Virus record (IMG/VR): IMGVR_UViG_3300018891_000001
Span: 124,001-188,000 of that record
Reading direction: 5' to 3' (one strand)
DNA: 64,000 nt
In this document: positions 7,844-46,642 of the stretch, piece by piece
Numbering within the stretch: position 1 is the stretch's first letter
Layout: every line of letters starts with the position of its first letter
The notes under the pieces: generated by a model
What the model was told of the DNA's origin: nothing
Database searches by the model: none
Seen by the model: the letters and a program-made list of their open reading frames with translations, nothing else
Program-made: the position numbers and the translations under genes

Positions 7844-10381
7844 ATGTTTACAAAAAGTTATATTGACAAGCTAAACAAGGATATTGAAAAATATACGACC
7901 AAATATCCAGAACGAAAAATCTTTCCAATCACTGAAAACATGACTCGCACATTTGAAGGCGTATCTCAAACTGTCATGCTTGACCGGTATTCTCATAATG
8001 ATATGCTTCATGAAACATTGGAATCCGGAGATTTTGTTGTATTAACAATCAAAGATGATCCAAAATGGCCAACCCAAGGATTTGGATGGGTGCAATCCAT
8101 TGATTGGAAACACCGAAAAGCCCTTGTTAAAGTGGATGAGCAATTTGCAGGAGCGTTAGAAGGAGAAGAAGCAGATACTCTTTTGGTAGAACGAAATTTA
8201 GATGTGGTCCAAAAACCATTAGAAATTTTCTATGAGCAAATTGCTAAACGAAACGCATGGGCACTTTCCCAAGTAGAGAAAACTGAAGAGAAAAGACAGG
8301 AATGGTTTGAAAAGTTCTATCACGAATTAAAAGAACTTCATTTTGTGCCTGCAGGACGTGTGTTGCATGGAGCAGGATCGGGAACAGACGTTACATATTT
8401 CAACTGCTATGTAATGCCATTTGTCAAAGACTCCCGTGAAGGCATTTCTGAGCATCGTGGTAAGGTCATGGAAATTATGTCTAGAGGCGGCGGAGTTGGA
8501 ACAAACGGCTCTACCTTGCGTCCTCGAAATGAAGTGGCCCGTGGAGTCAATGGAAAATCATCGGGTTCAGTGTCATGGTTAAATGATATCTCAAATCTAA
8601 CTAACTTAGTTGAACAAGGTGGAAGCCGCCGTGGTGCACAAATGATTATGCTTGCTGATTGGCATCCGGATATTGTAGAATTTATCATTTCAAAAATGCA
8701 AAATCCAAAGATTTTGAAATTCATCATCGAGAATACCCATGATGAACATATCAAAGAAGTCGCAAAAGCCAAGTTAAAATTTGTACCATTGACCGAAAGA
8801 GAAAAAAGAGCTTATGAAGCTTTAGTTAGATCTCATGTCACAGAAGATATAGATCCTATTGTAGAAGAAGCAAAGTCTATTCTAGCCGATGGTGGTACAT
8901 GGTCTGTTCATAACCCAGAATTTTTAACAGGTGCCAATATATCTGTCTGCTTAACTCATGAGTTCATGAAAGCTGTAGAGAACGATGGAGAATATAAACT
9001 TCGTTTCCCTGATGTCGCTAATTATACAGAAGAAGAAATGAAAGATTATAACGAAAAATGGCATGAAATAGGCGATGTACGTGAATGGGAAAAGATGGGG
9101 TATGATGTCCGTATACATCGTAAGATTCGTGCAAGAGAATTATGGAAACTGATTAATATTTGTGCAACGTATTCAGCGGAGCCAGGCATTTTCTTCATTG
9201 ATAATGCCAATGATATGACAAACGCCAAAGCATACGGACAAAAAGTTGTAGCAACCAATCCATGCGGAGAACAGCCATTAGCCCCGTACTCTGTTTGTAA
9301 TCTTGCAGCTATTAACTTAGCAAAAATGGCAAGTTTTGAAACTGGTACAGTAGATTTTGAAAAATTAAAACGTACAGTAGAAATAGGTGTACGTATGCAA
9401 GATAATGTCATTGATGCAACTCCTTATTTCTTACCGGAAAACACAAAACAAGCTAAAGGAGAACGACGGGTCGGATTAGGGGTCATGGGATTGCATGATT
9501 TGCTGATTAAATGTGGCTTGGAATACGGAAGTAAAGAGGGAAATCAATTAATAGATAAAGTATTTGAAACAATTGCCTGCACCGCTTATCGAACCAGTAT
9601 TGAATTAGCAAAGGAAAAAGGAAGCTTCCCATTCCTTACTACAGAAGACAAGTTAGATGAAATTGATTTACGAATGAAATTTGTCAATACCGGTTACATG
9701 AAAAACATGCCAGAAGATATTCGAAAAAGTATTTTAAAACACGGTATCCGAAATAGTCACTTGCTGACGGTAGCTCCAACTGGAAGTACAGGCACCATGG
9801 TAGGAGGAAGCACAGGCCTAGAACCATATTTTAGTTTCGTTTATTATCGTTCCGGCCGATTAGGTAAATTCATTGAAGTCAAAGCACCGATCGTTCAAGA
9901 ATATTTAGAATTTAAAGGGTTGCCACTTGATACACCACTAAGTGAATTGCCATCATACTTTAAAGGGGCAATGGACCTTACACCGGAACAACACGCTGAT
10001 GTTCAATGCATCATTCAACGTTGGGTTGATTCCAGTCTTTCTAAAACCGTTAACGCTCCAAAAGGATATACGATTCAACAAGTACAAGAAGTATATGAAC
10101 GACTGTGGAAAGGCGGAGCAAAAGGGGGTACCGTTTATGTCGATGGAAGTCGAGATGCACAGGTATTATCGTTGACCCCAGAAGAAAACGATGTAGAGGA
10201 ATTGGATATTCAAGACACAAAAGAAGAACTTGCAAATGAATATCTCCAAACTCAAGAAACCATCGTTTACGGTAGTGAAGTTGGAAACATCTGCCCTATT
10301 TGTAAGGCAGGAGAAGTCAAAGACTTTGGAGGTTGCAATAGCTGCTCTAATTGCGGAGCTCAGTTAAAATGCGGCTTATAA
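7844..10381 (+). CDS. nrdJ: Class II (B12-dependent) ribonucleotide reductase
   Basis: FVPAGR, NCYV, GGSRRGA, TNPCGEQPL, TVAPTGS, C-terminal Cys ribbon; no small-subunit gene nearby. Confidence 0.92.
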   Translation: MFTKSYIDKLNKDIEKYTTKYPERKIFPITENMTRTFEGVSQTVMLDRYSHNDMLHETLESGDFVVLTIKDDPKWPTQGFGWVQSIDWKHRKALVKVDEQFAGALEGEEADTLLVERNLDVVQKPLEIFYEQIAKRNAWALSQVEKTEEKRQEWFEKFYHELKELHFVPAGRVLHGAGSGTDVTYFNCYVMPFVKDSREGISEHRGKVMEIMSRGGGVGTNGSTLRPRNEVARGVNGKSSGSVSWLNDISNLTNLVEQGGSRRGAQMIMLADWHPDIVEFIISKMQNPKILKFIIENTHDEHIKEVAKAKLKFVPLTEREKRAYEALVRSHVTEDIDPIVEEAKSILADGGTWSVHNPEFLTGANISVCLTHEFMKAVENDGEYKLRFPDVANYTEEEMKDYNEKWHEIGDVREWEKMGYDVRIHRKIRARELWKLINICATYSAEPGIFFIDNANDMTNAKAYGQKVVATNPCGEQPLAPYSVCNLAAINLAKMASFETGTVDFEKLKRTVEIGVRMQDNVIDATPYFLPENTKQAKGERRVGLGVMGLHDLLIKCGLEYGSKEGNQLIDKVFETIACTAYRTSIELAKEKGSFPFLTTEDKLDEIDLRMKFVNTGYMKNMPEDIRKSILKHGIRNSHLLTVAPTGSTGTMVGGSTGLEPYFSFVYYRSGRLGKFIEVKAPIVQEYLEFKGLPLDTPLSELPSYFKGAMDLTPEQHADVQCIIQRWVDSSLSKTVNAPKGYTIQQVQEVYERLWKGGAKGGTVYVDGSRDAQVLSLTPEENDVEELDIQDTKEELANEYLQTQETIVYGSEVGNICPICKAGEVKDFGGCNSCSNCGAQLKCGL

Positions 10382-18199: not shown

Positions 18200-19690
18200 A
18201 TGTGCCAAGGCATACACGTTCATGTACATAGTGAAGAAAGTTTGCTTGACGGATTATCAACTGTCAAACAGCTTGTTGCTAAAGCCAAAGCACTTGGACA
18301 TATTGCTTTAGGGCTTACCGATCATGGTGTGTGTGGAGCTATACCGGATTTTATTTCTGAGTGTCAGAAACAGGGTATTAAACCTATTCCGGGATGCGAG
18401 GTATACATGACCAAAAATCGTTTAATCAAAGGAAAAGAACTAGAAGAAATGCGTATCAAACTTTGCACCAAATACAAAATTACAGATCATAAAGGCAAGC
18501 CTAAGATGAAATTACTCCAAGATTTTCTTCGAAAAGTAGAAAAGAATTATGCTTGCTTTGAAGAAGAGGCTCGCATCCTATTAAAAGACTATCTCATGTC
18601 AAGTGACCCTGAACCCAAGGAGGAGTCACTTGATTTATTTTCCATCTATGAAATAGATTTTAATGAACCTCTAGAAGCGAAAAAAGCTCCCGATACTGTT
18701 GAAGAAAAAATAGAAGCTTTTAAAAAAGAAGTGTTTCACTACCTTGACTATGGTAATTTTCACATGGTGTTACTTGCCATGAATAATCAAGGACTGGAGG
18801 ATTTATATGAGATTGTTTCTGATGCTCATATTAATGGCTTCTATTCTGATCCTCGTACCGACCTTGATTTTATTCGAGAAAGAGGTCTGGGCAGGAATCT
18901 TATTGCTACTTCAGCCTGTCTTGGGAGTTATTTTAGTCAGCTCTGTTTGGCAGGAAGAATTGAAGAAGCGAAACAACATATTTTAGAATGCAAAGAAACC
19001 TTTGCACATTTTTATTTAGAAAAACAGGCTACCTCTATCCCCGAACAACTTTATATTAACCAAATCATTGATCAATTAGCCGTTGAAACCAATACACCGA
19101 AAATTCTCACCACAGACGTACACTATGCCAATAAAGAAGACAATCACATTCATGATATCCTTGTTACATCTTCTATTGGTAAGTGTATCTCTGATGAAAA
19201 CCGTATGAAATACGCCCATGAATTCTGGATGAAAAATGACGAAGAAATGATGGAAAAATGTTACGATCCAGAAGCATGGGGGAATACACTAAAAATTGCT
19301 GAAATGGTCAATGTTTCCTTACCGAAGGAGCCATTATTTCCAAAATTCTTGATTGAAGGAAATGAAACGGCTGATGAACTATTGAGAAAGAAAGCATGGA
19401 ACGGTTTATTCGAAATGGCATTAACCGAAGATATTGATATTCAAGAATACTCTCGAAGACTCCAATATGAACTGGATGTTATTTGTACAGAAGGATTTTC
19501 AGATTATTTCTTGATTACCGAAGATAAAATGAGAGCCACAAATGAAGCCGGCTTTTTAACAGGTCCGGGGCGTGGTTCGGGTGCAGGCTCACTCGTATGT
19601 CGATGCCTCAAAATTACTGCACTGGATCCGATTAAAGAAAACCTACTATTTGAGCGTTTCCTAAATCCAGAACGTGCTGGATATCCTGAT
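18200..19690 (+). CDS. dnaE: DNA polymerase III alpha, exon 1 (PHP domain and start of polymerase domain)
   Basis: HVHSEESLLDG, TDHG, SACLGS, GPGRGSGAGSLV, FERFLNPERAGYPD; the join 18200-19690 + 21004-21683 + 23092-24451 is 3531 nt and in frame. Confidence 0.9.
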
Positions 19691-21003
19691 TGGCTAACAA
19701 AATTTGTAGCGTAATGCATTTCATTTTCCTATCAATAATGATACAATAGATATAGATTATTGATAGGAGGAAGCAATAATGGGGAAACTTTATACGTATG
19801 ATATTATCTGTGAAACATGTGGAGAAACTGTAACTGTTACACGTTCAAGAAAAAATTCGAGATATTGCTCTAAATCGTGTGCATCCAAAGCGCCTCGAAA
19901 ATACAAAAACATCAACGAACAAGAAATTATTGATATGTATCAAAACGGATTATCCTTACAAAAGATTGAACAACAAACAAGCATCAAGATAGAGAAAATA
20001 AGAAAGATCATTCATCAAATAGGAATTATGAGAAGCAATAAAGAAAACTCTCGCAAATATCATATTAATCATGATTATTTTGAAACGATTGATACTGAAC
20101 ACAAAGCATATTGGCTTGGATTTATATATGCTGATGGATATATTGCAAAAAGAAAGGGTAATCAAAAATGCATCGGTATTGCATTATCAAGAAAAGATGA
20201 AGATCATATAAAAAATTTCTTGTTCGACGTTGATTCTAATTATGTAATTAGACAGTATACAGGAACAACTCCAGATGGAAAAGATTTTGAATATTCAAGA
20301 GTGATTATTACATCTGATAAAATGTTCGATGATTTATTGAATAAAGGAGTTGTCGAACACAAAACATTGGTTCTTCAATTTCCTTCATTCGAAATTGTCC
20401 CAAAAACTTTAATGCATCATTTTATCAGAGGATACTTTGATGGTGATGGATCATTCTCAAAATGCATAGAAGGATATACTCTTCCATATAAAGTGAGAAT
20501 CTGTGGAACAAAAGAGTTTCTTCAAGGCATTGAGAATTTTATTGGAATCAAAGGGAATTACAGTAAACGTCATAAAGATGATAAGAATAATTGGACATTA
20601 GAATACTCCAATAAAGAAGATATCCTTCAATTTGCTAATACCATTTACGAATATTGCACAATCTGCTTAAACAGAAAATATCAACGCTACAAAGAAATGT
20701 TGGATCAGTCGTCCTAATAAGAAACTATTAGGATTATCACTCGGTGAATTGCTGGAAACTCCTTAGAGCCTTATACACCACAACGTAGTTGGAAACGACA
20801 AGCGTGATGGTTTGAAAAGTATAAGGATTGGACAATCAGCAGCCAAGCTCCTAAGTCACAAGATATGGAGAAGGTTCAACGACCATCCCGTGGGAGGGAG
20901 TAGGGCAAATGCCCGAAGTGCCGAGCACCCAAACCGTTAAGGTCGGTGGGTGAAGATATGGTCTATTCCCTATACAAATATGTCGAAAGACAGGGTATCA
21001 AAG
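19691..21003 (+). mobile_element. Group I intron 1 in dnaE, HEG in P1 loop
   Basis: Core motifs gaattgctggaaac, aatcagcagccaag, gttcaacgacca, aagatatggtcta; ends in G; removal restores PD|LDIDY; the U.G register at the 5' site is not clean, so the boundary may be off by 1. Confidence 0.85.
19779..20717 (+). CDS. Intron-encoded LAGLIDADG homing endonuclease with N-terminal Zn finger and HTH
   Basis: YWLGFIYADG and FIRGYFDGDG; CETCG...YCSKSC. Confidence 0.9.
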   Translation: MGKLYTYDIICETCGETVTVTRSRKNSRYCSKSCASKAPRKYKNINEQEIIDMYQNGLSLQKIEQQTSIKIEKIRKIIHQIGIMRSNKENSRKYHINHDYFETIDTEHKAYWLGFIYADGYIAKRKGNQKCIGIALSRKDEDHIKNFLFDVDSNYVIRQYTGTTPDGKDFEYSRVIITSDKMFDDLLNKGVVEHKTLVLQFPSFEIVPKTLMHHFIRGYFDGDGSFSKCIEGYTLPYKVRICGTKEFLQGIENFIGIKGNYSKRHKDDKNNWTLEYSNKEDILQFANTIYEYCTICLNRKYQRYKEMLDQSS

Positions 21004-21683
21004 CTCGATATTGATTACTCATATGATGGAGCACGATGGGTACAAATGTACTTAAAAGAAAAATACGGGCATGATAAAGTTGCACAAATTGGAACCAAAG
21101 GAACGTTAGCAGCAAGAGCCGTCATCCGTCGTGTCGGAAAAACATTAGGATTAGAAAACGCCACAGTGGATGCTTTTGCAAAATCGATTCCTTCCCGTCC
21201 TGGTATTACATTAAATGAGGCTTATGCTGAAGAACCAATGGTACAGCAATATGCACAAACTTATCCGCAGTGGTGGGAAGCGGCAAAAGCATTAGAAGGT
21301 CATATTAGTCAAGTCGGAGTTCATGCCGGAGGAATTGTCTTATCTCCTGTTCCTCTCACCAAAGTCACTCCACTTCGCTTGGATAGTGAAGGACTTGAAA
21401 CAACCCAATATGATATGAAGTGGATTGAAAAATTCCTCGTCAAATTTGATATTTTAAAACTCGATACGCTGGACTTGATTAAAAAGACGATGGAGTTTGC
21501 AGGTATTTGGGGAACGATGGATCCGTATCGAGATATTGATGTTAATGATCCAAACATCTATAAAAATGTGTATAATCAACTCAATTTATCTGGTATCTTC
21601 CAGTGTGAATCCGATCTGTTTCGAAAAATTATTAATGATATGAAACCCAACTCTTTTGCTGATATTTCGGTTATTGTTGCCCT
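21004..21683 (+). CDS. dnaE: DNA polymerase III alpha, exon 2
   Basis: LDIDYS, VAQIGT, GVHAGGIVLS, LVKFDILKL, GIFQCES. Confidence 0.9.
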
Positions 21684-23091
21684 TAACTAATCCGGTCAAT
21701 CGGGGGCAACATTAAAAAAGCGGGTTATATGCTGGAACACCCTAAAGCCTACGGTACGCATAGCGTAACAATCCGTATGGATGTAACAATGGGCAACCAG
21801 CAGGGAAGGGTAGCTCGAAACCCACCCTCAGAGACTGGGAGAATATCTCCGCTTATGGAAGGTAACGACCATAAGCAACCCCGCTAGGATTGCTGTGAAG
21901 CAAACCGAATGATACAGTCCGACCTCTAGTGAAAGCTAGAGAGCTAGGCAGAAATGACCTAGCCATTATGACAAACAGGTTGACAACATATGAATTAATT
22001 CAAGGCGCTTATAAGGAGTCCAATATGGAATAGCAAGGTATTTGTAACCATGTTGCAGCAACAATTCCTTTTTAATCTGATCACGTTGTTGAATTTTTAA
22101 CAAGTCATCTTCACCGTTAGGATGATATTTCTCATACAAGTGGTAATGTTGCTCACCATGGTATTCAACACAAAGCTTATATTCTTCATAAAAAGCATCC
22201 ACATAAAGATGTTTACCAGTTGCAGAATTAATCAAGAAATCAAAAGTCTTTTCAGTAACCATTGGTGTATCTAAAATAGATGAAATCATTTTAAAGTAAT
22301 ATTGAGCAGTTCGATTTTCCTTTGTATAGTTTGCAGGAACACCGGCAAGCTCACACGCTTTGACAAATCCGAATCGGCGTTTATAAGTTTCACTAGAAAA
22401 CTTCGATTCAGCATCCACTAATGATTGAGATACAAAACCAAAATCGTTGTAAAGATTTCTTAATTCTTGCAGCAATTCCTCATCTGGTATGTTTTGTGGA
22501 TTTGCAATTGAACAACCTGCTTTTTCAAAAGCATTGTTCCATGATTTGAATAAACGATAAATAACATTTTGCGAATATTTACCTTGCTTTAAATAAAGCT
22601 CCTTAGTAATGCGACCATTAGTTTGAAAGACTGATTGAATATCAGCAATTACTTCATCTTCTGTGTAAATCGTTTTTTTACAAGCACTTGCAGGATTTTG
22701 TTGATCACTAATTGGAACACCGGCTTCACTATAAGCTAAATACACAGAAGCAAATTCTCTTTTAAAAGTATCGTATTTCCATTTTCCATAAGTATTAATA
22801 ATAGCTTGAGTGACCTTGCCATGTTCCTTATATAATCGTTGAATTTCAGTAATCAATGATTCACGAGTAGGTTTAATATCTTCTCCTGTAAGAGCTTTAG
22901 TAAAATGAGAAATGCCACCAAACTTTTTAAGTTGATAATACGTGTAACGAGAATGATTCATATAAATCTGTTTGGTGACTTTCCCGTATTCTTTGTAAAG
23001 TCTTTCAAAATCATTTAATAATTGCTCATATGTTACGTCCATATATAATTCCTCCTTAAAAGAACCTGTTTGTTATATTGTAACATAAAAG
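21684..23091 (+). mobile_element. Group I intron 2 in dnaE, with antisense HEG
   Basis: P1 gttgccct/ggggcaac with U.G; P10 atcg/cggt; tatatgctggaac, aaccagcagg, ctcagagact, aatgatacagtcc; terminal G 23091; removal restores AL|GRPGP. Confidence 0.9.
21966..23042 (-). CDS. Putative homing endonuclease: helical repeats plus Vsr/DUF559-like PD-(D/E)XK domain, antisense to its intron
   Basis: Repeated E....I..L....GK.T....Y units; LYVDAFYEEYKLCVEYHGEQHY...RDQIKKE; RBS aaggagg. Confidence 0.75.
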   Translation of the reverse strand: MDVTYEQLLNDFERLYKEYGKVTKQIYMNHSRYTYYQLKKFGGISHFTKALTGEDIKPTRESLITEIQRLYKEHGKVTQAIINTYGKWKYDTFKREFASVYLAYSEAGVPISDQQNPASACKKTIYTEDEVIADIQSVFQTNGRITKELYLKQGKYSQNVIYRLFKSWNNAFEKAGCSIANPQNIPDEELLQELRNLYNDFGFVSQSLVDAESKFSSETYKRRFGFVKACELAGVPANYTKENRTAQYYFKMISSILDTPMVTEKTFDFLINSATGKHLYVDAFYEEYKLCVEYHGEQHYHLYEKYHPNGEDDLLKIQQRDQIKKELLLQHGYKYLAIPYWTPYKRLELIHMLSTCLS

Positions 23092-24451
23092 CGGTAGACC
23101 AGGACCTTTAGATCTAATTCCTACATATGTTGCTCGCAAATGGGGAAGAGAAAAAGTCACTTATCCATTTCTAGAGTTAGCACCAGTACTTGAAGAAACA
23201 TATGGAGTTTGGGTATATCAGGAGCAGCTTATGAGAGCTTCACAGATTTTAGGTGGACTGACACTAGGACAAGCTGACATGATTCGTAAGGGAGTTGCTA
23301 AGAAAAAATTTGATTTAATGAACCGATGGATTGATCTCATGATTTACGGCAGCGAGGAGTATAAACGTCGTCATGCTCAATTAGTCAATCAATATCCGTT
23401 AGATGCGGAAGGAAAATCCACCGTACCACTTAACGAAGAAGGAAAACCTGCCTTATGGGTCGATTATGAGTACGAGCAAGTTCCTGATGTAGAAGGGGCC
23501 ATTGCTCGTGGATTTGATGAACCAACCTTGCTCAAAATTAAAGCCGACTGGATTAAGTTCGGTAATTACTGTTTCAATAAAGCCCACTCAGCGGCATATG
23601 CCTTTTTATCATGCATTACCGCATGGTTAAAATGCTACTATCCTGTTGAATTTATGGCTGCTTTATTAACCATGGCAGAAGGAAAGAAAGATAAAAACGG
23701 AAATCCAAAAACCATTCACTACATGAAAGAATGTGAAGAAATGGGAATCCGTATTTTGTCTCCTGATATTAATCAATCCATGTCTGGCTGGACTCCAATT
23801 TCCTATAATGAGATCCAATACGATAATCAGAATCGACCATGTATCGGTGAAATTCGCTATGGTCTAGCAAGTATTGGCGGTGTAAGTGAAGAATCTGTTG
23901 TAGAAATTATTTTGCGTCGTTCGTATTCTTCCTTAGAAGATTTTATTGCCAAAGTCAACAGCACAAAAGTGAATAAAACCAAAGTAATAGCCTTAATTAA
24001 AGCGGGTTGTTTTGATTCCTTCACTCCTAATCGTAATCTTCTTCTTCGTAACTATTATCGATCCCGTGGTGAAGAGTATGAGCATATCCCAACAACTACA
24101 AACAAAGCTACTATTCTTTCTTACGAGCGAGAAGTTTTCGGGACAGCCATTAGTATTCGTTCTCGATGGGAAAAAATCGAAGAAGGAGCTCAAACTCAAC
24201 TCACCGGTCATATTAATGAAATCGAATCCTGGAGAGCGAAAACAGGAAAAACCCATTTTACATTGGTGGTTGAAACACAGGAAGAACCAATCTTCGTTAC
24301 GGTATGGGGTTATTTAATGGAAAAATATAAAAATGAACTTCAAATTGGAAACAAAGTCACCATTAAAGGGGAAAAATCGAAAAACAAGCTGATTGCAAAA
24401 ACCGTCCAACAACACGCCAATATGTATGAAGTAGATTTGCCTTCAGCATAG
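23092..24451 (+). CDS. dnaE: DNA polymerase III alpha, exon 3
   Basis: GRPGP, YGVWVYQEQLM, YCFNKAHSAAY, YYPVEFMAALL, OB fold at the C-terminus. Confidence 0.9.
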
Positions 24452-31673: not shown

Positions 31674-31790
31674 ATGGAAGTATTATTAGTGGCTGGAACC
31701 ATTATGATTATGACCAACACTATGGTGCTGTTAATGTTAGCACCTACTATTTTAAAAGAGGTGAAGCATGGTGCCACTCGGAAATTTTAA
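31674..31790 (+). CDS. Small hydrophobic peptide
   Basis: RBS ggagg; MEVLLVAGTIMIMTNTMVLLML. Confidence 0.5.
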   Translation: MEVLLVAGTIMIMTNTMVLLMLAPTILKEVKHGATRKF

Positions 31791-34074
31791 ACGACTCTTT
31801 CAACCTAGTTTAATTCAAAACGAAAAAGACGTATCTTATCATTTGCCTTCTTTATCACGAGCAGAAGCAAAAGCCCTTCTCTCCGCTCCCTTAGCGGGGG
31901 GAGGGGTCTTTGGCCTAGAAGCCCACCAAACAAAAGACCATGAAAGTCTTATTTTTTTTGCTCCGCCTTACTATAAAGTGGAATGGAACCTCGCAGACCG
32001 AGACGCTGTTTTTGAAAATCTTGAAACCTATAAAAAACAAATCACCATCATGCAACTATATACGAGTAAATCCTCATTGTTTCCTCTCTCCATTGAATAT
32101 ACTCAGTCTTTTTGGGAACAGGTTCGGCAATTTGCAGCTGATGATATCGGAATTATTTATCAAATTGTACTTGCATACCGACAAGACCGATGGAAAGAAC
32201 GAATCAAGGAGCAATATCAACTGTATCTAAGTGGAATCCAATCTCCCGCTGATCAAAAATGGGTACGCAGTATTCAAAATCGAATTAATCACTCCTTAGA
32301 TCATCTCTTGCAATGGGAGTTCAAATATGCCCCTATTCCTGAAGTGGAACAGAAACTAAAAGAAAATGGATTTCGATATAGTATTCGGCTCATTCTTTAT
32401 GGCGGTAATCGAGCGAGGCGAAGAAAACTAATACATGAAATACAACAAATTTTACGAACCATGGAGTATATCAATGAATGGAAAGTGAATACCTTTTTTG
32501 CGTTTGACGATATTATTCAGAATATCCAAAAACGCAAGCTCGATAATGTAGGAAAGCAACAAGTCTTATGTGTATCCGAATTGCTGCCATTTCTGATGTC
32601 CGAACATGTAGTGTACATTGAAAAACCGGCCATAAAAAAGGTAACAAAAACAAAGGTAAAAAATCCATTCGATCTCCTGCCGATAGGCAAGAAAATTCAA
32701 CAAGTCGATGGGAGTCAAATAGCTCAAAAATTTGTTTACGCTCTCCAAGAGTTAAAGGTAATTAAAGAAGAAATTGTTGCTAAACGAGTTCAATGTGGGC
32801 CAATCATGATGAAAATCACCTTTGATTTACCGAAGGGGATGCGTCTTTCGGATATAACAAAGAAAAATATGATTGAGGATATTCAGACTCATATGGGAGT
32901 CAAACATCTACAGATCTTACAAGGGGAGGATACGGGAGAATTCGATATTATGTTGCCACAAGAAAAAAGGCAAAAAATCTTTTTACGAGATTATGTGGAT
33001 ACCTCTGAATTTATGGAGTTTGCCGGACAACATCCACTTCCATTCTTTGTAGGGGTGGACGAAATAGGACGCTCCATTTTTCGTTGTCTAAGTGAAATTC
33101 GTCATATTCTTGTAGCAGGAACAACCGGATCCGGCAAAAGCGTGTGGATGAATCAACTTATTCTTACCTTGTTATTAATTCGCAAACCCGATGAACTTCA
33201 ATTTTATATGATTGATCTAAAACAAGTGGAACTCACCTGCTTTCAAGATTTCCCTCATGTGCGAGAAGTCATCACAGATGCGAACAAAGCTATTCACCTA
33301 CTTAGGAAAATCCAAAAAGAGATGGACAGACGTTATCAATTATTTAGTGAAACAGGAGTAAAAAACATTGCCTTGTATAATAGAAAACATCCTCATCAAA
33401 AGCTCCCTTATATTGTGTGCATTATTGATGAATATGCGGAATTAGCATTACGAACGGATAGTATACATGAACTCGTTCAAAGTATGGCACAACTCGCAAG
33501 GGCTGCTGGCATCCACTTGATTATTGCAACCCAAGATCCACGAGTTGAAGTAATCCCAGGAATTATTAAGTCCAACATGCCGGGGAAAATCGGTTTCCGT
33601 TGCTCTAATGGAAACAGTTATCTAACATTTTTAAATACGAAACCACCTTTTAACCTATTAGGAAACGGGGATGGGGTCATGAGCTTTGAGGGGCAAATAG
33701 AGGAGCATATTCGCTTTCAGGGATGTCTGATTATCGATGATCCCAAAAACGAAGGGCTTGAAAGTCAGTTGATTGCACAAATCGCAAGTCATATGGACGA
33801 CTATGAAGGAGTAGATTTACCAGAATTAGAGGAAACAGAAGAAGTGCATATAGAAGAAACAGAGACAGAAATAGACCGACTTAAACGCATTATTGCTCAA
33901 ACAGGGGAAACAAGGGTATCACAACTAAGGGAAATGATGAAAATTAACATCAATCGATTGAATGATTTGATGAGGGAACTCGCAGAAGAAGGGTGGCTGC
34001 AAAAGCCAGAATCCAAACAGCAAGGATACCAATTAATTGCACCAGAAGAGGAATTGGAAAAGTGGAGACAATAA
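31768..34074 (+). CDS. FtsK/SpoIIIE-family DNA translocase
   Basis: HILVAGTTGSGKS, IDLKQVEL, IIDEYAE, ARAAGIHLIIATQ, LLGNGDG; C-terminal winged helix. Confidence 0.9.
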   Translation: MVPLGNFKRLFQPSLIQNEKDVSYHLPSLSRAEAKALLSAPLAGGGVFGLEAHQTKDHESLIFFAPPYYKVEWNLADRDAVFENLETYKKQITIMQLYTSKSSLFPLSIEYTQSFWEQVRQFAADDIGIIYQIVLAYRQDRWKERIKEQYQLYLSGIQSPADQKWVRSIQNRINHSLDHLLQWEFKYAPIPEVEQKLKENGFRYSIRLILYGGNRARRRKLIHEIQQILRTMEYINEWKVNTFFAFDDIIQNIQKRKLDNVGKQQVLCVSELLPFLMSEHVVYIEKPAIKKVTKTKVKNPFDLLPIGKKIQQVDGSQIAQKFVYALQELKVIKEEIVAKRVQCGPIMMKITFDLPKGMRLSDITKKNMIEDIQTHMGVKHLQILQGEDTGEFDIMLPQEKRQKIFLRDYVDTSEFMEFAGQHPLPFFVGVDEIGRSIFRCLSEIRHILVAGTTGSGKSVWMNQLILTLLLIRKPDELQFYMIDLKQVELTCFQDFPHVREVITDANKAIHLLRKIQKEMDRRYQLFSETGVKNIALYNRKHPHQKLPYIVCIIDEYAELALRTDSIHELVQSMAQLARAAGIHLIIATQDPRVEVIPGIIKSNMPGKIGFRCSNGNSYLTFLNTKPPFNLLGNGDGVMSFEGQIEEHIRFQGCLIIDDPKNEGLESQLIAQIASHMDDYEGVDLPELEETEEVHIEETETEIDRLKRIIAQTGETRVSQLREMMKININRLNDLMRELAEEGWLQKPESKQQGYQLIAPEEELEKWRQ

Positions 34075-34288
34075 TCTCCACTTTTTTGTGGTATTTTACA
34101 GAATAGCAAAACTATGATACTATGAAAAGAGAGAGAAAAAACAAAATTCTACAAAAATAGACAGGAAAAAACCCTTTACTTAGGGGGTAAAGGGTTCGAA
34201 AGGTAATATGCGCATATACAATATTCAACTATCTTTATTATAATGCGTATTCCTTTCCCTGTCAAAAAGGAAAGGAGATTTTTTTCGA

Positions 34289-34840
34289 ATGGAACACGAA
34301 AAACTGAATATCTTTGATCCGAATGTCATTTACTACGTGCAACTGCCAACAGGAAAGACTCGGAGATTGAGTGAAGAAGAACTAGAAAAAATAACACTCA
34401 ATTCCCCCAACAACATTCCTGAGTTAAACGGTAAAAAGACATGGATCAGTAACTACGTTGCTACGTTCTGGATGCCGTTTATGAAGCCAGGGCCATTTGC
34501 GGTTTACGTTCAATTGCAGAAAATGGCATATGGGGATAAAGATCATGCATTTCCATCTGTTCCGTATTTAGCCATGATTCTGGGTATTAGTGAACGAACT
34601 GTACAAAATTACATTGATCATTTGGTGGATCTGGGATTCGTAATTGTATTAGAACGGTTTGAAGCACAAAGCAACCGGCAGCTAAGTAATTTATATTTGC
34701 TATCAACAACGACTCCGTTTCTTCCTAGGGAGAAGTATGAGAAGTTGCCGAAGAAGTTACAAAGAGAACATGACCGATTTATGGATTACATAAAGTTTAA
34801 AAAGATTTTACACGAAGAACGAATTCCTGACTATGAGTGA
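34289..34840 (+). CDS. Replication initiator-like winged-HTH protein
   Basis: FAVYVQLQKMAY...AFPSVPYLAMILGISERTVQNYIDHLVDLGFV; directly upstream of the iteron array. Confidence 0.7.
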   Translation: MEHEKLNIFDPNVIYYVQLPTGKTRRLSEEELEKITLNSPNNIPELNGKKTWISNYVATFWMPFMKPGPFAVYVQLQKMAYGDKDHAFPSVPYLAMILGISERTVQNYIDHLVDLGFVIVLERFEAQSNRQLSNLYLLSTTTPFLPREKYEKLPKKLQREHDRFMDYIKFKKILHEERIPDYE

Positions 34841-34841
34841 T

Positions 34842-34868
34842 TAGCCCGCATTAGCGGGCTATTTTTTT
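34842..34868 (+). terminator. Rho-independent terminator
   Basis: tagcccgc-atta-gcgggcta-ttttttt. Confidence 0.85.
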
Positions 34869-34878
34869 ATGCTATTTT

Positions 34879-35121
34879 CTATCCACAAAAATCTGTGGAT
34901 ATGTGTATAAAAGGGGATGAAAATTTTACAGGGGGGAAACCGGGTGAAAAAATTGCAGGGGGATATCTAGGGGGTGAAAATTTTACAGGGGGATATTTAG
35001 GGGGTGAAAAATTTGCAGGGGGATTTATACACAAGAGGGGAGGGTGAAAATTTTACGGGGGTGTAATTTTTTCAGGGAAAGGATGAAAAATCTGCGGGGA
35101 ACGACTGAAAAATCTGCATCC
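34879..35121. repeat. Putative replication origin: about 8 iterons plus DnaA boxes
   Basis: 20-bp units GG[GA]TGAAAAWWTT[AG]CAGGGG at 34915, 34942, 34972, 35002, 35042, degenerate at 35059, 35081, 35103; DnaA boxes 34879, 34894 (1 mismatch each), 34902, 35025 (perfect). Confidence 0.8.
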
Positions 35122-35327
35122 GAATAAATACTAAGAAGAAGAAAGTCAATTTGAAGAAGTTTTTTAATGAATATCCCTTGTCTACCTTTTCTCTGATAAA
35201 AGACATTGCAGTTAGAACTATGTTCTAAATGCACAGTCGAAATGAGAGTGCAAGGGAAATTCATAAGAAGAAGAAATGGAGACAAAAAAAGCAAATGCGA
35301 CAATGCATCTGCTTCGTGATTGGATAC

Positions 35328-35552
35328 TTATTTTTTTAACATGAATCGTGGAATGGCATAGAAAAGAGCTGAAAGGGCTAAACCGACCAAAAAACTACCT
35401 AATGTAGCATTCGGATCAAAAAATGAACCAATGGCTGAGCACAAAAACATAGTGCCCAGAATATTTGGAATCAAACCTTTCCACCCATGCATCATATGTA
35501 ACTTCCAAAAAGCTATGACTAAGATAAAGAATAAAATTGTGCTGAGACTCAT
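35328..35552 (-). CDS. Small membrane protein
   Basis: Three hydrophobic segments; RBS gaggag. Confidence 0.65.
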   Translation of the reverse strand: MSLSTILFFILVIAFWKLHMMHGWKGLIPNILGTMFLCSAIGSFFDPNATLGSFLVGLALSALFYAIPRFMLKK

Positions 35553-35709
35553 CTTATTCCTCCTACTAAATCAAGTAAAAAGAAGACCTATGCCTTAAAA
35601 GCAAAGGTCTCAAAGTTTGGTGAATACAAAGTTATAAAATAACTAGGTTGGAAGATAATAAAAGAGACAGCATCATTATATCCAATCCTAAGCGATTCGT
35701 CTAGAAAAA

Positions 35710-37002
35710 TTAGAACAGCGAAAATTCCATTTGCCCTTCAATTACTTTACGACTTTTGAATTCTGCCATTTTGAGTTCCACCTCATACACTGCTGTTTCG
35801 CATACATGATGAGACGAAATACGATAAGAGGCTAATCGCTGCTGTCGTTCTTCTAAAAATTTTTGATTGCTTTCTACAAGCTGACGAATGATTTCAGCTT
35901 CAGAGCGACTTAATTTCGCATTAAACGGTGGATTGGTTGTAATACATTCAAACTTGATCTCTCTAGCATGGGCTTTTATAATTTGAATTTTTCGATCATC
36001 CGAAAGAGAATTCCACGGTTGATGCAAATCCTCCTCATATTGAAAAATCTCACGTTTTCGCAAATCTACTGGATGAACAAAAATATCTATTTGTTTACTT
36101 TCTTCTTCGAAAATCCGGATAGGTGCTCGGTATTCTCCCAATAGTGAATTTCCCCAATAAATACGAGTATCCGTATTAAACTCAAAATATCGGTGAATGG
36201 TTTTTGTTTCTGGGTTAATATGCAATCCCATAATCGGTTTTGGCACATATAAAAGAGAAGGCAAAAATAAAAAGGCTTGAATACAAGCCACTTTTACCAT
36301 CGTTAAACTTAAATCAGCACCTACTAAATTTAAGCAATTGGATGGCAGCACCATAGCAGCACCACCAATACAAGGTTCAAACTGACTATCCGTAGGAGAA
36401 GAATTTAGCATCATATTGATAGCTTCTGTTACTTGAATAGGAGTTGGAAAATAATCCAAATGTCCCTTTTGGCCATGTTCAGCCACAAAAGTAGACAATA
36501 CATCCGTGGGCTCTAAAAATAATAAATCCAAACTGAATTCCCGATACAACTCTTCCCAAAGAGAATCTGGAATCGAAGGACGTTTGCAATAGCTAATGCC
36601 TAATGCATAACCAATCCATTCAATAAAATCCGTAATCCGATATCCCCGATGATATACTCGATCCATGCATTTGGTTAACATTTTATAAGCAGGAGTATTC
36701 ATGATGGGCGAAGACCGAACCGGATTTTTCGGCATATCTCCATCTTGGTAAGATCCTTTGGCCAAGATAGAAAGCCACGCATACCAACGACCATACAGCA
36801 TGGTTTCAATCATCAAGCCCATTCCACGCATCCAGCCAAACCGGTACGAATCTTTCACATCTTGGGGTGGTTCTGTCCAAAGAGGAGAGTATTGAAGTTC
36901 TAATAATTTTCGTTGAATCTCCAGCCATTGTTCTGGGGAAAGGGAAGCACAGAACTCTTGGCCACGACGTTCCGATTCCAATCGACCATATGATTTTTTC
37001 AT
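35710..37002 (-). CDS. Orphan N6-adenine DNA methyltransferase-like protein
   Basis: DYFPTP, FEPCIGGAAM, GADLS, ITTNPPF. Confidence 0.7.
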   Translation of the reverse strand: MKKSYGRLESERRGQEFCASLSPEQWLEIQRKLLELQYSPLWTEPPQDVKDSYRFGWMRGMGLMIETMLYGRWYAWLSILAKGSYQDGDMPKNPVRSSPIMNTPAYKMLTKCMDRVYHRGYRITDFIEWIGYALGISYCKRPSIPDSLWEELYREFSLDLLFLEPTDVLSTFVAEHGQKGHLDYFPTPIQVTEAINMMLNSSPTDSQFEPCIGGAAMVLPSNCLNLVGADLSLTMVKVACIQAFLFLPSLLYVPKPIMGLHINPETKTIHRYFEFNTDTRIYWGNSLLGEYRAPIRIFEEESKQIDIFVHPVDLRKREIFQYEEDLHQPWNSLSDDRKIQIIKAHAREIKFECITTNPPFNAKLSRSEAEIIRQLVESNQKFLEERQQRLASYRISSHHVCETAVYEVELKMAEFKSRKVIEGQMEFSLF

Positions 37003-37354: not shown

Positions 37355-37558
37355 TTAATTAGCTTTCACCAATTCATACTCATCTTTATTTAATACTATG
37401 TCACCGCCAAATGATTCTTCATAAACCGTAACCGATTGATCTTCTTTATCATAGTATTTTACTTCATAGATCTTTCCGATTAAATGTTCAATCGACAATT
37501 GTGCGACAGCAATACGTTGTGTGTCAGGTTTACTTGCGATGACTCTAACCTTCATCAT
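37355..37558 (-). CDS. Hypothetical protein
   Basis: RBS ggag; overlaps the doc stop. Confidence 0.6.
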   Translation of the reverse strand: MMKVRVIASKPDTQRIAVAQLSIEHLIGKIYEVKYYDKEDQSVTVYEESFGGDIVLNKDEYELVKAN

Positions 37559-38145
37559 TTTACTCCTTTATCCTTTTTGTATCCTTTTTGCATATCGTCC
37601 AATAATTTTTGGAGTTCTTTTCGTTCTTCCATTTCTTTTTCTGTTAAAATTTCCTGAATCTCTAATTCATTTAACAAGTCTATGTATTCTTTATACAATG
37701 GTATCAAGGTTTCCTTGCTTGGTTCCATTCCTTCTATATATTGAGATTCAGGAACGCTGTTTCTTTCTAACCAATCAGCCAATTTTTCCAGACTCCACTT
37801 TTTATTTGCAACCAATTTTGAAACAAAGTATAATTCCCAATCTGATATTACGACCACATATCCGTTAAATTCCAAAAAAGTGGCTGCAGTAATATATGCT
37901 GTACGTTTGTTTCCATCCACAAAGTACTGACTTGTGGCTAGAGTATGCATATATACTGCAGCTTTGGTAAATAAACCTGGATATGGTTCATACGTATGCC
38001 CACCAAAATCATAAGTTTGAAACGGTTTATATGCCAGACTATCAATAAGACCTGGTTCATACTCACCAGGCAACCCACCAAACTCTTGTAGAGCCATGTC
38101 ATGAAACATTCGAATATGTTTGGGCTCTAAAGATTCAATGTTCAA
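37555..38145 (-). CDS. doc: Doc/Fic-family toxin (His-to-Gln motif variant)
   Basis: EFGGLPG, LFTKAAVY, SQYFVDGNKRTA. Confidence 0.85.
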   Translation of the reverse strand: MNIESLEPKHIRMFHDMALQEFGGLPGEYEPGLIDSLAYKPFQTYDFGGHTYEPYPGLFTKAAVYMHTLATSQYFVDGNKRTAYITAATFLEFNGYVVVISDWELYFVSKLVANKKWSLEKLADWLERNSVPESQYIEGMEPSKETLIPLYKEYIDLLNELEIQEILTEKEMEERKELQKLLDDMQKGYKKDKGVK

Positions 38146-38285
38146 TTTTTACTCAACCTCTTTAACCCTTTGTAATTTCTGCGGATGACTTTGGCGGCAA
38201 TTTTTTGGAGTTTCGCATCCTTTTCATTGGATTTGCTAGTTCCTTTTTTCATTTCATCCTCCAATATTAAAACTTGTTGGAACAT
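38142..38285 (-). CDS. Putative antitoxin partner of Doc
   Basis: 47 aa, overlaps doc start by 4 nt; C-terminal KVIRRNYKGLKRLSKN resembles antitoxins found before doc genes. Confidence 0.6.
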   Translation of the reverse strand: MFQQVLILEDEMKKGTSKSNEKDAKLQKIAAKVIRRNYKGLKRLSKN

Positions 38286-38363
38286 ATATATTCCCCCTTT
38301 ATCCGCATTATTACTTATCATATTATATATTTTTTCTAAATTATACAAGCCTTTTCCTGCTTG

Positions 38364-38655: not shown

Positions 38656-38925
38656 TTATGGTTTTAAGTAATTAGCAATATATTGACAGGCTTCCTGAAA
38701 TTCTTTTTCTGTTTCAAATGCAGCAAATGCATGAATCTCGCCGCTTTCATGATAATACACACAATATGGCTTATCTTTAGGATTCAGCTCTAAAACAATA
38801 TTGCCATATAAATGATAAGCTGATTTCGTTGTTGTACATTCTGTAAGCCACAAGTCCTCTTTCGGACAACCATATTTCAAAAGCGTTTCCACTTTTCTTT
38901 CTTCAAACTCATGAATGGCAAGCAT
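38656..38925 (-). CDS. Hypothetical protein
   Basis: RBS aaggag. Confidence 0.6.
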   Translation of the reverse strand: MLAIHEFEERKVETLLKYGCPKEDLWLTECTTTKSAYHLYGNIVLELNPKDKPYCVYYHESGEIHAFAAFETEKEFQEACQYIANYLKP

Positions 38926-39955
38926 CCAAATTCACTCCTTTATGTTCGCTTGTTGTTTTTCTATACTTGTGTTCTAAATCCATCATCCAAGTATCTAGCC
39001 ATTGTTGAAATTCACCTTGATAAACTTGTTGAAGTTGTTCATATTCTTTCTGATACACCTCTTTTAAAGGTCTTCTTGTGTAATGGAAATAAGGAACACT
39101 TTTCATAGACTTATTGCCGGAACGCTGTGCTTTCCGGAGTTCTTCATCAAAATAGCAAGCTTTTAAAAACGACAAGGGTTCTTGTTCTATGATTTCTGTC
39201 CAACTCATTCCTTCTATATCACAATTAAACGGGCACAAGTAACATCGAGAACGTTTAGATGGCATGTTATGTGCCAATAAAAAATCAATACTTTCTTGTG
39301 TAGAAACATGTTGCTCCACTAATGGATAGGATAGATACATATATTTATATTGTGGAGATCGGTACGTACTAATCCGATGAATTTCATCATAACTAAATCC
39401 AATATCGATAATAAAAGCAATATGAGATGGCATTCTTTGATGAGGAGATAATCCGTGTTTTTCCATCACCAATCGTCTTGCTGTTTGTTTTACAGGAATG
39501 ATTTTAAAATCCACCGTACATTGTCTTGGCATTATGCCGGCTTTTTGTTCATGACCATATTCATCAATTCGATTAAAATACAAAGGCATTTGGAAACGCT
39601 GATAGTCGGTATGAATATACCGCATCAGCATTTCCTCTAATCCTTTTTCCATACTTTGATGGTGAGTAATAATAAAAGGAGTCGTGTTTTGATATTGAGT
39701 TTGTCGGCGTTTCCACCATTCAATTTGATCATGAATAAATTGAGGTTCTGCTCCAGTATCTGAGAAAATAATAAAATCATAGTGACGTTTTCCTTGCAAA
39801 TGTTCTTCTAATAGATGAGCGGATTGTGTGCCGCCTCCAAAAGAAAGAACATAATAAATATGCTCAATGCCTTTTTGATGTAACTCTTGTTCGATTTCTT
39901 GCTTTGTTTTAAAAACGCCATCTTTGTATTTCTTGTGTGTTCGAAAATCCTTCAC
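38909..39955 (-). CDS. PAPS-reductase/PP-loop (adenine nucleotide alpha hydrolase) family protein
   Basis: YVLSFGGGTQS, IIFSDTGAE, RQCTVDFKI, SRCYLCPF. Confidence 0.75.
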   Translation of the reverse strand: MKDFRTHKKYKDGVFKTKQEIEQELHQKGIEHIYYVLSFGGGTQSAHLLEEHLQGKRHYDFIIFSDTGAEPQFIHDQIEWWKRRQTQYQNTTPFIITHHQSMEKGLEEMLMRYIHTDYQRFQMPLYFNRIDEYGHEQKAGIMPRQCTVDFKIIPVKQTARRLVMEKHGLSPHQRMPSHIAFIIDIGFSYDEIHRISTYRSPQYKYMYLSYPLVEQHVSTQESIDFLLAHNMPSKRSRCYLCPFNCDIEGMSWTEIIEQEPLSFLKACYFDEELRKAQRSGNKSMKSVPYFHYTRRPLKEVYQKEYEQLQQVYQGEFQQWLDTWMMDLEHKYRKTTSEHKGVNLDACHS

Positions 39956-45824: not shown

Positions 45825-46394
45825 TTATATCCCTCCCGTAAGCTCTTGAATCCGGCTAGTTGCATAATAATAAAGAGAACGAGCTTCATCAATATCTTTA
45901 GCCAACCACAATTTTTCTTCCATTTCTTCTTTTAGCTGTTTTAGTTCATTTTTTATCTCATCAATATTTAAAATTCGGGATTTAATGTATTCATCAGCCG
46001 GTGAACCTTCAGATATTCTCTGATATTGAAAAATTCGGGATTTAATGTATTCATCAGCCGGTGAACCTTCAGATATTCTCTGATATTGAAAAGTATCTTC
46101 ACAGCCTCTAAAGAGTTTAGAAATAGCGATTTTATGAGGTTCTTTTTGATTTTCAAGATGTCTGATTTGTTTTTCTAATTCCCTGATTTGTTGGTCAATA
46201 TCTTTAATGGCATTAAAATGAGGCTGCAAATTATTTTGAACAATAAACTCTTGTTTGAGCTCTTCCTTTCGCTGTGCTAATACATCTCGTCGGTCATAGA
46301 GAATATCATTGATTTTACCCTCAATCATATCAATCAGTTTCTCAATACGTTTTGCATCTAATCCTCGGTCATGACGAATAATTTGTGTAGTCAT
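45825..46394 (-). CDS. Hypothetical coiled-coil protein with a 20-aa internal duplication
   Basis: FQYQRISEGSPADEYIKSRI twice. Confidence 0.7.
   Translation of the reverse strand: MTTQIIRHDRGLDAKRIEKLIDMIEGKINDILYDRRDVLAQRKEELKQEFIVQNNLQPHFNAIKDIDQQIRELEKQIRHLENQKEPHKIAISKLFRGCEDTFQYQRISEGSPADEYIKSRIFQYQRISEGSPADEYIKSRILNIDEIKNELKQLKEEMEEKLWLAKDIDEARSLYYYATSRIQELTGGI
45970..46092. repeat. Perfect 60-bp tandem duplication
   Basis: 45970-46029 is identical to 46030-46089. Confidence 0.95.
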
Positions 46395-46396
46395 GA

Positions 46397-46642
46397 TTAT
46401 CCCTCCCAATGTCCATGACGTTTTAATATTTCAATGACTTCATTGATATAAGGCTCATCCATGTTAATTACAATATAGCTATTCAGTTTTTTTCCTTCTT
46501 CTATGCGACCTTTGTTGATTTCCTCGCATAAATCACGTAAATACATCTTCTGTGTTTCCCAACCGTATTTCTCTACATCTTCTGTTTTTAATACAATGTA
46601 TTTTGGGTGTTGTTTGATTTCTTGAATGGTTGAATCAATCAT
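46397..46642 (-). CDS. Hypothetical phage protein
   Basis: KYIVLKTEDV...YIVINMDEPY...V.EILK. Confidence 0.65.
   Translation of the reverse strand: MIDSTIQEIKQHPKYIVLKTEDVEKYGWETQKMYLRDLCEEINKGRIEEGKKLNSYIVINMDEPYINEVIEILKRHGHWEG

Follow-up and report, generated by a model that had tools for sequence, protein, structure and literature searches.

The window analyzed here comprises 64,000 nucleotides, bases 124001–188000 of a single 215,870-bp contig (IMG/VR virus record IMGVR_UViG_3300018891_000001), and coordinates refer to it unless the genome is named. Where oppositely oriented genes converge in this window, a short gene, rep, encodes a protein resembling plasmid replication initiators and is followed by an intrinsic terminator, three clustered DnaA-like boxes, and an array of direct repeats (iterons) that encloses a fourth such box. 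An earlier sequence-only reading of positions 34289–35121 had picked out these elements, and all of them lie where it placed them; the functional unit spans more than that region, reaching left to ~34095 and right to ~35287 (Table 1). The region is best read as a theta replicon of plasmid type in a jumbo phage-plasmid, a myovirus that doubles as a plasmid. This interpretation is given a probability of roughly three in four, and comparison with related replicons makes the role of the region as a maintenance origin well supported.

Table 1. Replicon features and neighboring genes, in window coordinates.
Feature	Position	Strand	Remarks
FtsK/SpoIIIE-like translocase gene	31768–34074	+	last large gene of the plus arm, directly upstream of rep
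Terminator-like hairpin	34055–34088	+	end of the plus arm, after the FtsK-like gene
Candidate rep promoter	34095–34123	+	9/12 match with TG; predicted leader ~160 nt
Candidate small RNA unit	34163–34265	−	promoter, ~68-nt predicted transcript, terminator
Inverted repeat (hairpin) over the rep ribosome-binding site	34251–34277		88% complementary; conserved in pGspE55-1
rep	34289–34840	+	183 aa; short-form initiator of the pBS72 RepA family; HTH_36 DNA-binding half only
rep intrinsic terminator	hairpin 34842–34861, then T-run, to 34868	+
DnaA-like box 1	34879–34887	+	8/9 match to TTATCCACA
DnaA-like box 2	34894–34902	−	8/9 match to TTATCCACA
DnaA-like box 3	34902–34910	−	8/9 match to TTATCCACA
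DnaA-like box 4	35025–35033	+	8/9 match to TTATCCACA; between repeats 4 and 5
Iteron array	34915–35123	+	~20-nt direct repeats, A/T core between G-runs
Candidate unwinding element	35100–35180		right of the repeats; 68–75% A+T vs ~63% in the genome
Terminator-like hairpin	35315 to 35288	−	end of the minus arm
doc toxin gene	37555–38145	−	Pfam Fic/DOC 2e-12; TIGR01550 DOC_P1, 57 bits vs cut-off 38.65
Candidate antitoxin gene, 68-aa open reading frame	38142–38348	−	overlaps doc start by 4 bp; no family match

The Rep protein belongs to the family of RepA from pBS72, a theta replicon used in vectors of the pHT01 type. It matches the Pfam domain HTH_36 (1.4e-10) and PHROG 26369, "replication initiation protein" (1.2e-34), and BLASTP aligns it with the 344-aa RepA of plasmid pBS72 at 28% identity over ~175 residues (3e-17). 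The aligned parts are residues 14–165 of Rep and 37–212 of RepA, and HTH_36 is present in both proteins. Searches by tblastn recovered Rep homologues from 46 plasmid records (Bacillus, Paenibacillus, Cytobacillus, Geobacillus, and others) and ten phage records, the matches including pHT01, which has pBS72 as its Bacillus replicon. A shortened pBS72 replicon still works after deletion of two small upstream open reading frames (ORFs), and the Rep-homologous ORF is therefore what remains (PMC6331482). Derivatives of pBS72 are described as low-copy theta replicons, presumed to be DnaA-dependent and PolI-independent (PMC5615212; PMC3217849).

The closest relative of Rep is encoded by the Geobacillus subterraneus plasmid pGspE55-1, whose protein has 179 aa and is 57% identical over the full length. 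When the cassette was searched at the DNA level, this Geobacillus plasmid was the sole match and no phage was found; a pattern-based search of viral and genome contigs returned no close Rep relatives. The longer members of the family carry a C-terminal DnaA_N domain, detected by Pfam scan in pBS72 RepA and in the Rep of phage Jenst and annotated in pBP1 and pCR3, whereas a profile scan found DnaA_N neither in the 183-aa Rep nor anywhere else in the genome. The short Rep is nevertheless not a broken gene, since its pGspE55-1 counterpart is similar from end to end. No match to RepA_N was obtained, and Rep is the only HTH_36-type initiator detectable in the whole genome. A single-sequence AlphaFold2 model of the protein reached a pLDDT of 43.

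Downstream of rep, the arrangement of DnaA-like boxes and iterons stands out from the rest of the genome. Across the window, 26 DnaA-like boxes were observed against 23 expected, so that their total is not above chance; the cluster at the origin is, however, the densest group in the 216-kb genome, and random placement of boxes would give three in 32 bp with P ~0.003 and four in 155 bp with P ~0.0006. Outside the window, a looser group of three DnaA-like boxes, one of them a perfect TTATCCACA, occupies genome positions 199798–200065. The roughly eight direct 20-bp repeats seen in the sequence-only reading resolve into five strong copies, which start at 34915, 34942, 34972, 35002, and 35042 and differ from a 20-nt consensus by at most two mismatches, and three degenerate ones starting at 35059, 35081, and ~35103. 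Five strong repeats compare with 0.04 expected, the 30-bp period of those at 34942, 34972, and 35002 is exact, and no further copies occur elsewhere in the genome. The terminator of rep and that of the minus arm enclose a pocket of ~430 bp, and the origin within it is thereby shielded from both arms.

The 5′ region of rep contains a second layer of predicted regulation. A leftward promoter with a perfect sigma-A consensus (TTGACA, 17-nt spacer, TATAAT; 12/12 matches) runs from 34265 to 34237, and a terminator hairpin on the same strand, from 34197 to 34169, is followed by a T-run. Both hexamers and the spacing are identical in pGspE55-1, and the same leftward unit lies upstream of pBP1 rep, with a 12/12 promoter with TG and a terminator ~70 nt downstream. 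Leftward promoters occupy the corresponding place in pG9842_140 (11/12) and Jenst (10/12), and no strong one was detected at the 5′ end of pBS72 rep. The predicted RNAs fold better than shuffled sequences (z of −2.5, −6.2, and −4.4), and Rfam returned nothing above its thresholds for the unit. Transcription of rep from the candidate promoter at 34095–34123, to which a comparable plus-strand promoter ~200 bp upstream of pGspE55-1 rep corresponds, would make the small RNA antisense to the rep leader and a possible countertranscript; with an overlapping promoter at 34215–34244 in use instead, the two transcripts would be divergent. The inverted repeat over the rep ribosome-binding site encloses the −35 hexamer of the leftward promoter, and the left arm reproduces part of the sixth iteron (35067–35083) in inverted orientation. 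The inverted repeat is a plausible candidate for a Rep operator or a translational hairpin.

The genome that carries this replicon is that of a giant phage of Bacillus type with a jumbo myovirus-type gene set. It is circularly assembled, the first 62 bases of the contig recurring at its end, and the IMG/VR record is described as having direct terminal repeats and as 100% complete by CheckV. Virion genes include those for portal, head-maturation protease, and tail sheath, and an amidase endolysin is encoded as well. The genes for replication and nucleotide metabolism specify a ribonucleotide reductase, a DnaE-type polymerase (in pieces), sliding clamp, primase, DnaB-like helicase, ThyX, and an SNF2-type helicase; major capsid and terminase are annotated in the collinear plasmid pBP1. 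A searched stretch of 5.2 kb was present in four runs of a single biocrust metagenome study, and contigs from these runs, which may be the source of the record and lend it no independent support, are letter-identical over 33000–37000 (depth 135–223x in three). This identity across runs argues against the repeat array being an artefact of a single assembly.

The closest relatives of the phage are found among plasmids of cultured bacteria. Its tail sheath is 70–73% identical to ORFs on eight plasmids of 140–260 kb from cultured isolates of B. licheniformis, B. paralicheniformis, B. halotolerans, B. cereus, and B. thuringiensis, and ~45% identical to ORFs on two Paenibacillus plasmids; the sheath-bearing plasmid records overlap those with Rep homologues. 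The circular 200,793-bp pBP1 of a cultured Bacillus paralicheniformis matches 143 of the 268 ORFs (median identity 61%), and the matches follow a single collinear order through the entire genome. The nearest deposited phages are distant. Phage vB_BauM_KLEB27-3, of similar size and with a 37% identical DnaE, lacked a comparable gene order over the 41 kb surrounding that gene. In all, relatives entered as plasmid records are known from at least ten independent cultured isolates; two of these records are shown as circular, and the cargo on these plasmids includes LXG toxin/immunity and transporter genes. A complete plasmid-style origin, together with closest relatives that are plasmids in cultured bacteria, makes it very probable that the element is a giant phage-plasmid.

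Further evidence for an extrachromosomal prophage comes from partition and integration functions. An actin-like gene of ParM/Alp type lies outside the window (genome 23975–25162), near the point where the two gene arms diverge, and its product is 67% identical to the ParM/StbA of pBP1, whose gene is likewise located near the divergence. ALP_N and ParM-type profiles match the protein; the StbA_N profile was silent on its own control, so that the ParM assignment rests on the direct comparison and the other profiles. Just upstream of the gene, a very A+T-rich repeat stretch (genome 23790–23861) may be the centromere of this system. Profiles for ParA (AAA_31), ParB, and tubulin/TubZ found no match. 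No integration module was recognized in the genome with the two profiles used, Phage_integrase (tyrosine) and Resolvase (serine recombinase), and no tyrosine integrase was matched in pBP1, pG9842_140, or pSCDB14. The sequence-only reading had proposed a phage-plasmid and named circularity, absence of an integrase, and GC skew over the whole replicon as checks; the assembly is circular, neither recombinase profile has a match, and the cumulative skew reaches its maximum at this site. The virion and lysis genes, the collinear plasmids, the ParM/Alp gene, and the lack of a recombinase match uphold the proposal.

Comparison with known replicons places the origin within an established type. As in pBS72, the replicon underlying the vectors pHT01, pNDH33, and pMTLBS72, a Rep with a homologous N-terminal region is followed by an origin in which repeats with an A/T core between G-runs accompany a DnaA box. 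In contrast to the present replicon, pBS72 has fewer and more widely spaced repeats, a single perfect DnaA box in place of the triple cluster, and a RepA extended by DnaA_N. The closest match in layout is pGspE55-1, in which a leftward promoter and a hairpin precede rep, likewise of short form, and the terminator is succeeded by three DnaA-like boxes in the same orientation pattern and by G-run iterons that, as here, enclose a DnaA box (a perfect one in pGspE55-1). This 127-kb plasmid differs in bearing type IV secretion and Tad-pilus-type genes with no tail-sheath match, and its array has another iteron core, an A+T-rich spacer, and some inverted iterons. In pBP1, the rep terminator precedes five DnaA-type boxes, about ten 22–24-bp iterons, and an A+T-rich stretch, and pG9842_140 has eight iterons and a DnaA-like box downstream of rep. 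The recurrence of the order rep, terminator, boxes, and iterons in pGspE55-1 and pBP1, along with the homology to pBS72 RepA, bears out the earlier view of a plasmid-type origin. All compared replicons share an A/T core flanked by G- or C-runs, although the core sequence differs in each.

The replicon also occupies a constant position within a variable context. In pBP1, pSCDB14 (B. licheniformis), and pG9842_140 (B. cereus), which share the collinear jumbo-myovirus gene set, the accessory zone where the gene arms end contains a Rep of this family accompanied by DnaA boxes and iterons, and a ParM/Alp gene lies near the divergence, as here. The order in pG9842_140 (DnaE, endolysin, Rep, opposing genes) is the order in this genome, and in pBP1 and pSCDB14 Rep closes the replication-gene arm, with cargo genes next to it. 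These three plasmids differ in having long-form Reps with DnaA_N and other iterons; Rep identity is ~32% (32% to pBP1 Rep), far below the median of the core. Sequence comparison thus places the replicon at a variable accessory zone of an otherwise collinear family of 140–260-kb Bacillaceae phage-plasmids. A study of pG9842_140 found no validated minireplicon (Zheng et al. 2013, PMC4219350), and a survey of phage-plasmids described a small, plasmid-only community, "pp_Blicheniformis", without known phage relatives (Pfeifer et al. 2021, PMC7969092). The family of pBP1, pSCDB14, and pG9842_140 is probably this community.

The maintenance logic resembles that of phage P1, in which oriR, with RepA iterons and DnaA boxes, is combined with ParAB partition and the Phd-Doc addiction module. 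Both elements appear to unite an iteron-binding Rep acting with host DnaA, active partition, a Doc-family toxin, and a non-integrating prophage. They differ in that the Rep families are unrelated, the host here is Gram-positive, and partition is of actin type rather than ParAB; the present genome is twice as large, and no second control array like incA is seen. P1 also has a proven separate lytic origin, whereas none is known here. A further parallel is offered by the RepA_N plasmids of staphylococci such as pSK41, Gram-positive theta replicons in which Rep-binding repeats are combined with an antisense RNA on the rep leader. In these plasmids, the Rep family is different, the repeats lie inside rep, and the antisense RNA has been demonstrated experimentally, whereas here it is predicted.

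On this basis, a mechanism can be proposed. Rep monomers would use their winged-helix HTH_36 domain to bind the repeats, host DnaA would bind the adjoining boxes, and the two together would open the neighboring A+T-richer DNA at 35100–35180, so that a replicative helicase is loaded and theta replication proceeds at low copy number. With the short Rep, the helicase-loading proteins would probably be recruited through DnaA itself, because the DnaA_N-like C-terminal domain of the longer relatives is missing. Two controls would probably set copy number, Rep binding to the inverted partial repeat that covers the rep ribosome-binding site and the small RNA from the perfect consensus promoter in the rep 5′ region, and inheritance would be stabilized by the ParM/Alp protein and the Doc toxin module. 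A more specific version is put forward only tentatively and is itself doubtful: the replicon would be an exchangeable unit in a terminator-bounded pocket at the end of the arms, its Rep cut down to the DNA-binding half to serve solely as an origin-specificity factor for host DnaA, with dual control by iterons and a conserved but hitherto undescribed small countertranscript.

Several observations weigh against the interpretation as a maintenance origin. None of the boxes at the origin is a perfect DnaA box, the A+T enrichment of the candidate unwinding element is weak, and Rep lacks a domain present in all tested long relatives, so that a regulatory role or a crippled initiator is conceivable. 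By gene orientation and GC skew, one would place a conventional origin at ~20 kb of the genome and a terminus at this site. Jumbo phage genomes can also enter bacterial assemblies through persistent infection rather than as plasmids (bioRxiv 10.1101/2024.12.31.630880), and the present element is known only from metagenome contigs.

The question of orientation can be examined at the scale of the whole genome. Plus-strand genes fill the genome between ~20 and 159 kb, and minus-strand genes cover the remainder; the arms diverge at ~20 kb and converge at ~159 kb (window ~35 kb), where both end at the origin. The claim that genes on both sides point toward the site holds. In pBP1, too, the origin coincides with the terminus expected from skew and gene orientation, which suggests that the skew follows the coding strand or another mode of replication. 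The third-codon-position skew of counter-oriented genes (n = 4 and n = 2) was contradictory and did not separate replication-driven from coding-driven skew. Forks leaving this origin would run head-on into both arms, which would be tolerable only with the arms silent and fits a prophage state.

The same geometry bears on the strongest alternative, namely that this site is the only origin of the phage and is used in the lysogenic plasmid state as well as in the lytic cycle, where replication would pass after induction to the phage's own helicase, primase, DnaE, and clamp. The genome has one detectable HTH_36-type initiator, encodes those four replisome components with no other recognizable origin-binding protein, and contains no other iteron-like array except an unrelated one. 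The latter consists of three 42-bp units (genome 6994–7119, outside the window), each a G-run followed by an A/T-rich palindrome; it lies in a gap of 74% A+T upstream of a DEAD-box helicase gene, is not kept at the matching place in pBP1, and is the one remaining array that might qualify as a second origin. Since neither a second initiator nor a comparable repeat array was found, Rep could also serve lytic replication; the separate lytic origin that the sequence-only reading had inferred is hypothetical, as is the restriction of this site to times when the arms are repressed. Sole use of this site is nonetheless unlikely. Forks from it would meet all lytic transcription head-on, and the Rep module has been swapped between collinear relatives, as seen in its low conservation relative to the core, the alternation of short and long forms, and the differing iterons. 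The nearest relative of the module resides on a non-phage plasmid, which would hardly be expected if the module were closely partnered with the conserved phage replisome. Moreover, most ORFs have no assigned function, and a second initiator may escape recognition among them.

A second alternative holds that the phage is a non-temperate jumbo phage in a carrier state, whose captured plasmid module is vestigial or re-used and confers no stable maintenance. The metagenomic source with its very high contig depth, the short form of Rep, and the failure to recognize a repressor at or near the arm divergence would be compatible with this, and persistent virulent jumbo phages have been described in bacterial assemblies (bioRxiv 10.1101/2024.12.31.630880). 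A vestigial module is difficult to square with an intact rep ORF that has a plasmid orthologue of the same length, with the conservation of regulatory elements, DnaA boxes, and iterons alike, or with the presence of ParM/Alp and Doc. At least ten cultured isolates with relatives in plasmid records, two of them circular, and the cargo that these plasmids bear, further make a mere carrier state highly improbable. It is scarcely credible that the repeats are instead a centromere or operator array for a partition or transcriptional protein: HTH_36 is a general DNA-binding domain, the sole and weak match of Rep in a PDB sequence search was a GntR-like helix-turn-helix regulator (E 0.012), and actin-type partition systems do use repeat arrays as centromeres, yet the ParM/Alp gene is 135 kb away, the 170-residue alignment to the initiator of a working replicon extends beyond the helix-turn-helix, and a DnaA-box cluster occupies the same place in three replicons.

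The maintenance replicon sits in an accessory zone, genome 153.4–164.5 kb (window 29.4–40.6 kb), which is the only long stretch without pBP1 matches. Besides Rep and the origin, this zone contains the FtsK-like gene, Doc with its partner, and genes for methylase-like and PAPS-reductase-like proteins. The FtsK-like protein matches Pfam FtsK_SpoIIIE (1.2e-42) and phrog_3551 (9e-169) and is ~34% identical to a Herelleviridae protein of a type conserved in the SPO1-like members of that family. A pattern-based search of viral contigs gave no close relatives, and the gene, which has no match in pBP1, is an accessory neighbor of the replicon. At this site, pBP1 has neither the FtsK-like gene nor Doc and carries an LXG toxin, flagellin, and transporter instead. 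The sequence-only reading had cited a doc toxin–antitoxin pair in support of a plasmid state; the Doc half stands, scoring above the TIGR01550 cut-off, whereas the antitoxin half is less certain, as the 68-aa partner matches no antitoxin family. Two further products in the zone, a 430-aa protein with weak N6-methylase matches (35710–37002) and a 348-aa PAPS-reductase-like protein (38909–39955), may represent DNA-modification or defense cargo.

This kind of system is already known, and what is new is its assignment to this phage-plasmid family, the short form of Rep, and the conserved candidate small RNA unit. A concrete replicon can now be assigned to Bacillus and Paenibacillus "plasmids" of 140–260 kb that are really jumbo phages, including pG9842_140, for which none was named in 2013, and an uncultured soil-crust phage is linked to the same family. 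The result provides a Gram-positive, jumbo-sized counterpart of the P1 maintenance toolkit and indicates that replicon modules move between phages and plasmids without phage character, here one from Geobacillus. The short Rep and the leftward promoter–terminator unit offer handles on the recruitment of host machinery and the setting of copy number. The position of the origin at a skew-predicted terminus also calls for caution in skew-based origin calls for phage-plasmids.

The Rep family extends to other large phages of the Bacillales. Bacillus phages FADO, PJN02, and PK-3 (~165 kb) contain Rep homologues with a 23.2% match, and the same 23.2% match is found on plasmid records of ~162–166 kb from B. 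amyloliquefaciens and B. subtilis. In Brevibacillus phage Jenst, the Rep of this family adjoins a "partition protein". Further large Bacillales phages with the same Rep family may be phage-plasmids.

Some additional features of the window concern genes away from the replicon. The DnaE-type polymerase gene is split into three parts (18200–19714, 20950–21690, and 23231–24451) by two insertions, candidate introns or inteins, one holding a plus-strand ORF (19779–20717) and the other a minus-strand ORF for an HNH-repeat endonuclease (21966–23042); in pBP1 and pG9842_140, dnaE is a single uninterrupted gene. The 845-aa large subunit of ribonucleotide reductase (7844–10381) is 23% identical to pBP1 NrdE over a short stretch, and the nucleotide-metabolism module seems to have been replaced relative to that plasmid. 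Finally, a minus-strand ORF at 45825–46409 contains a perfect 60-bp tandem duplication (45970–46092; 2.0 copies, 100% identical).

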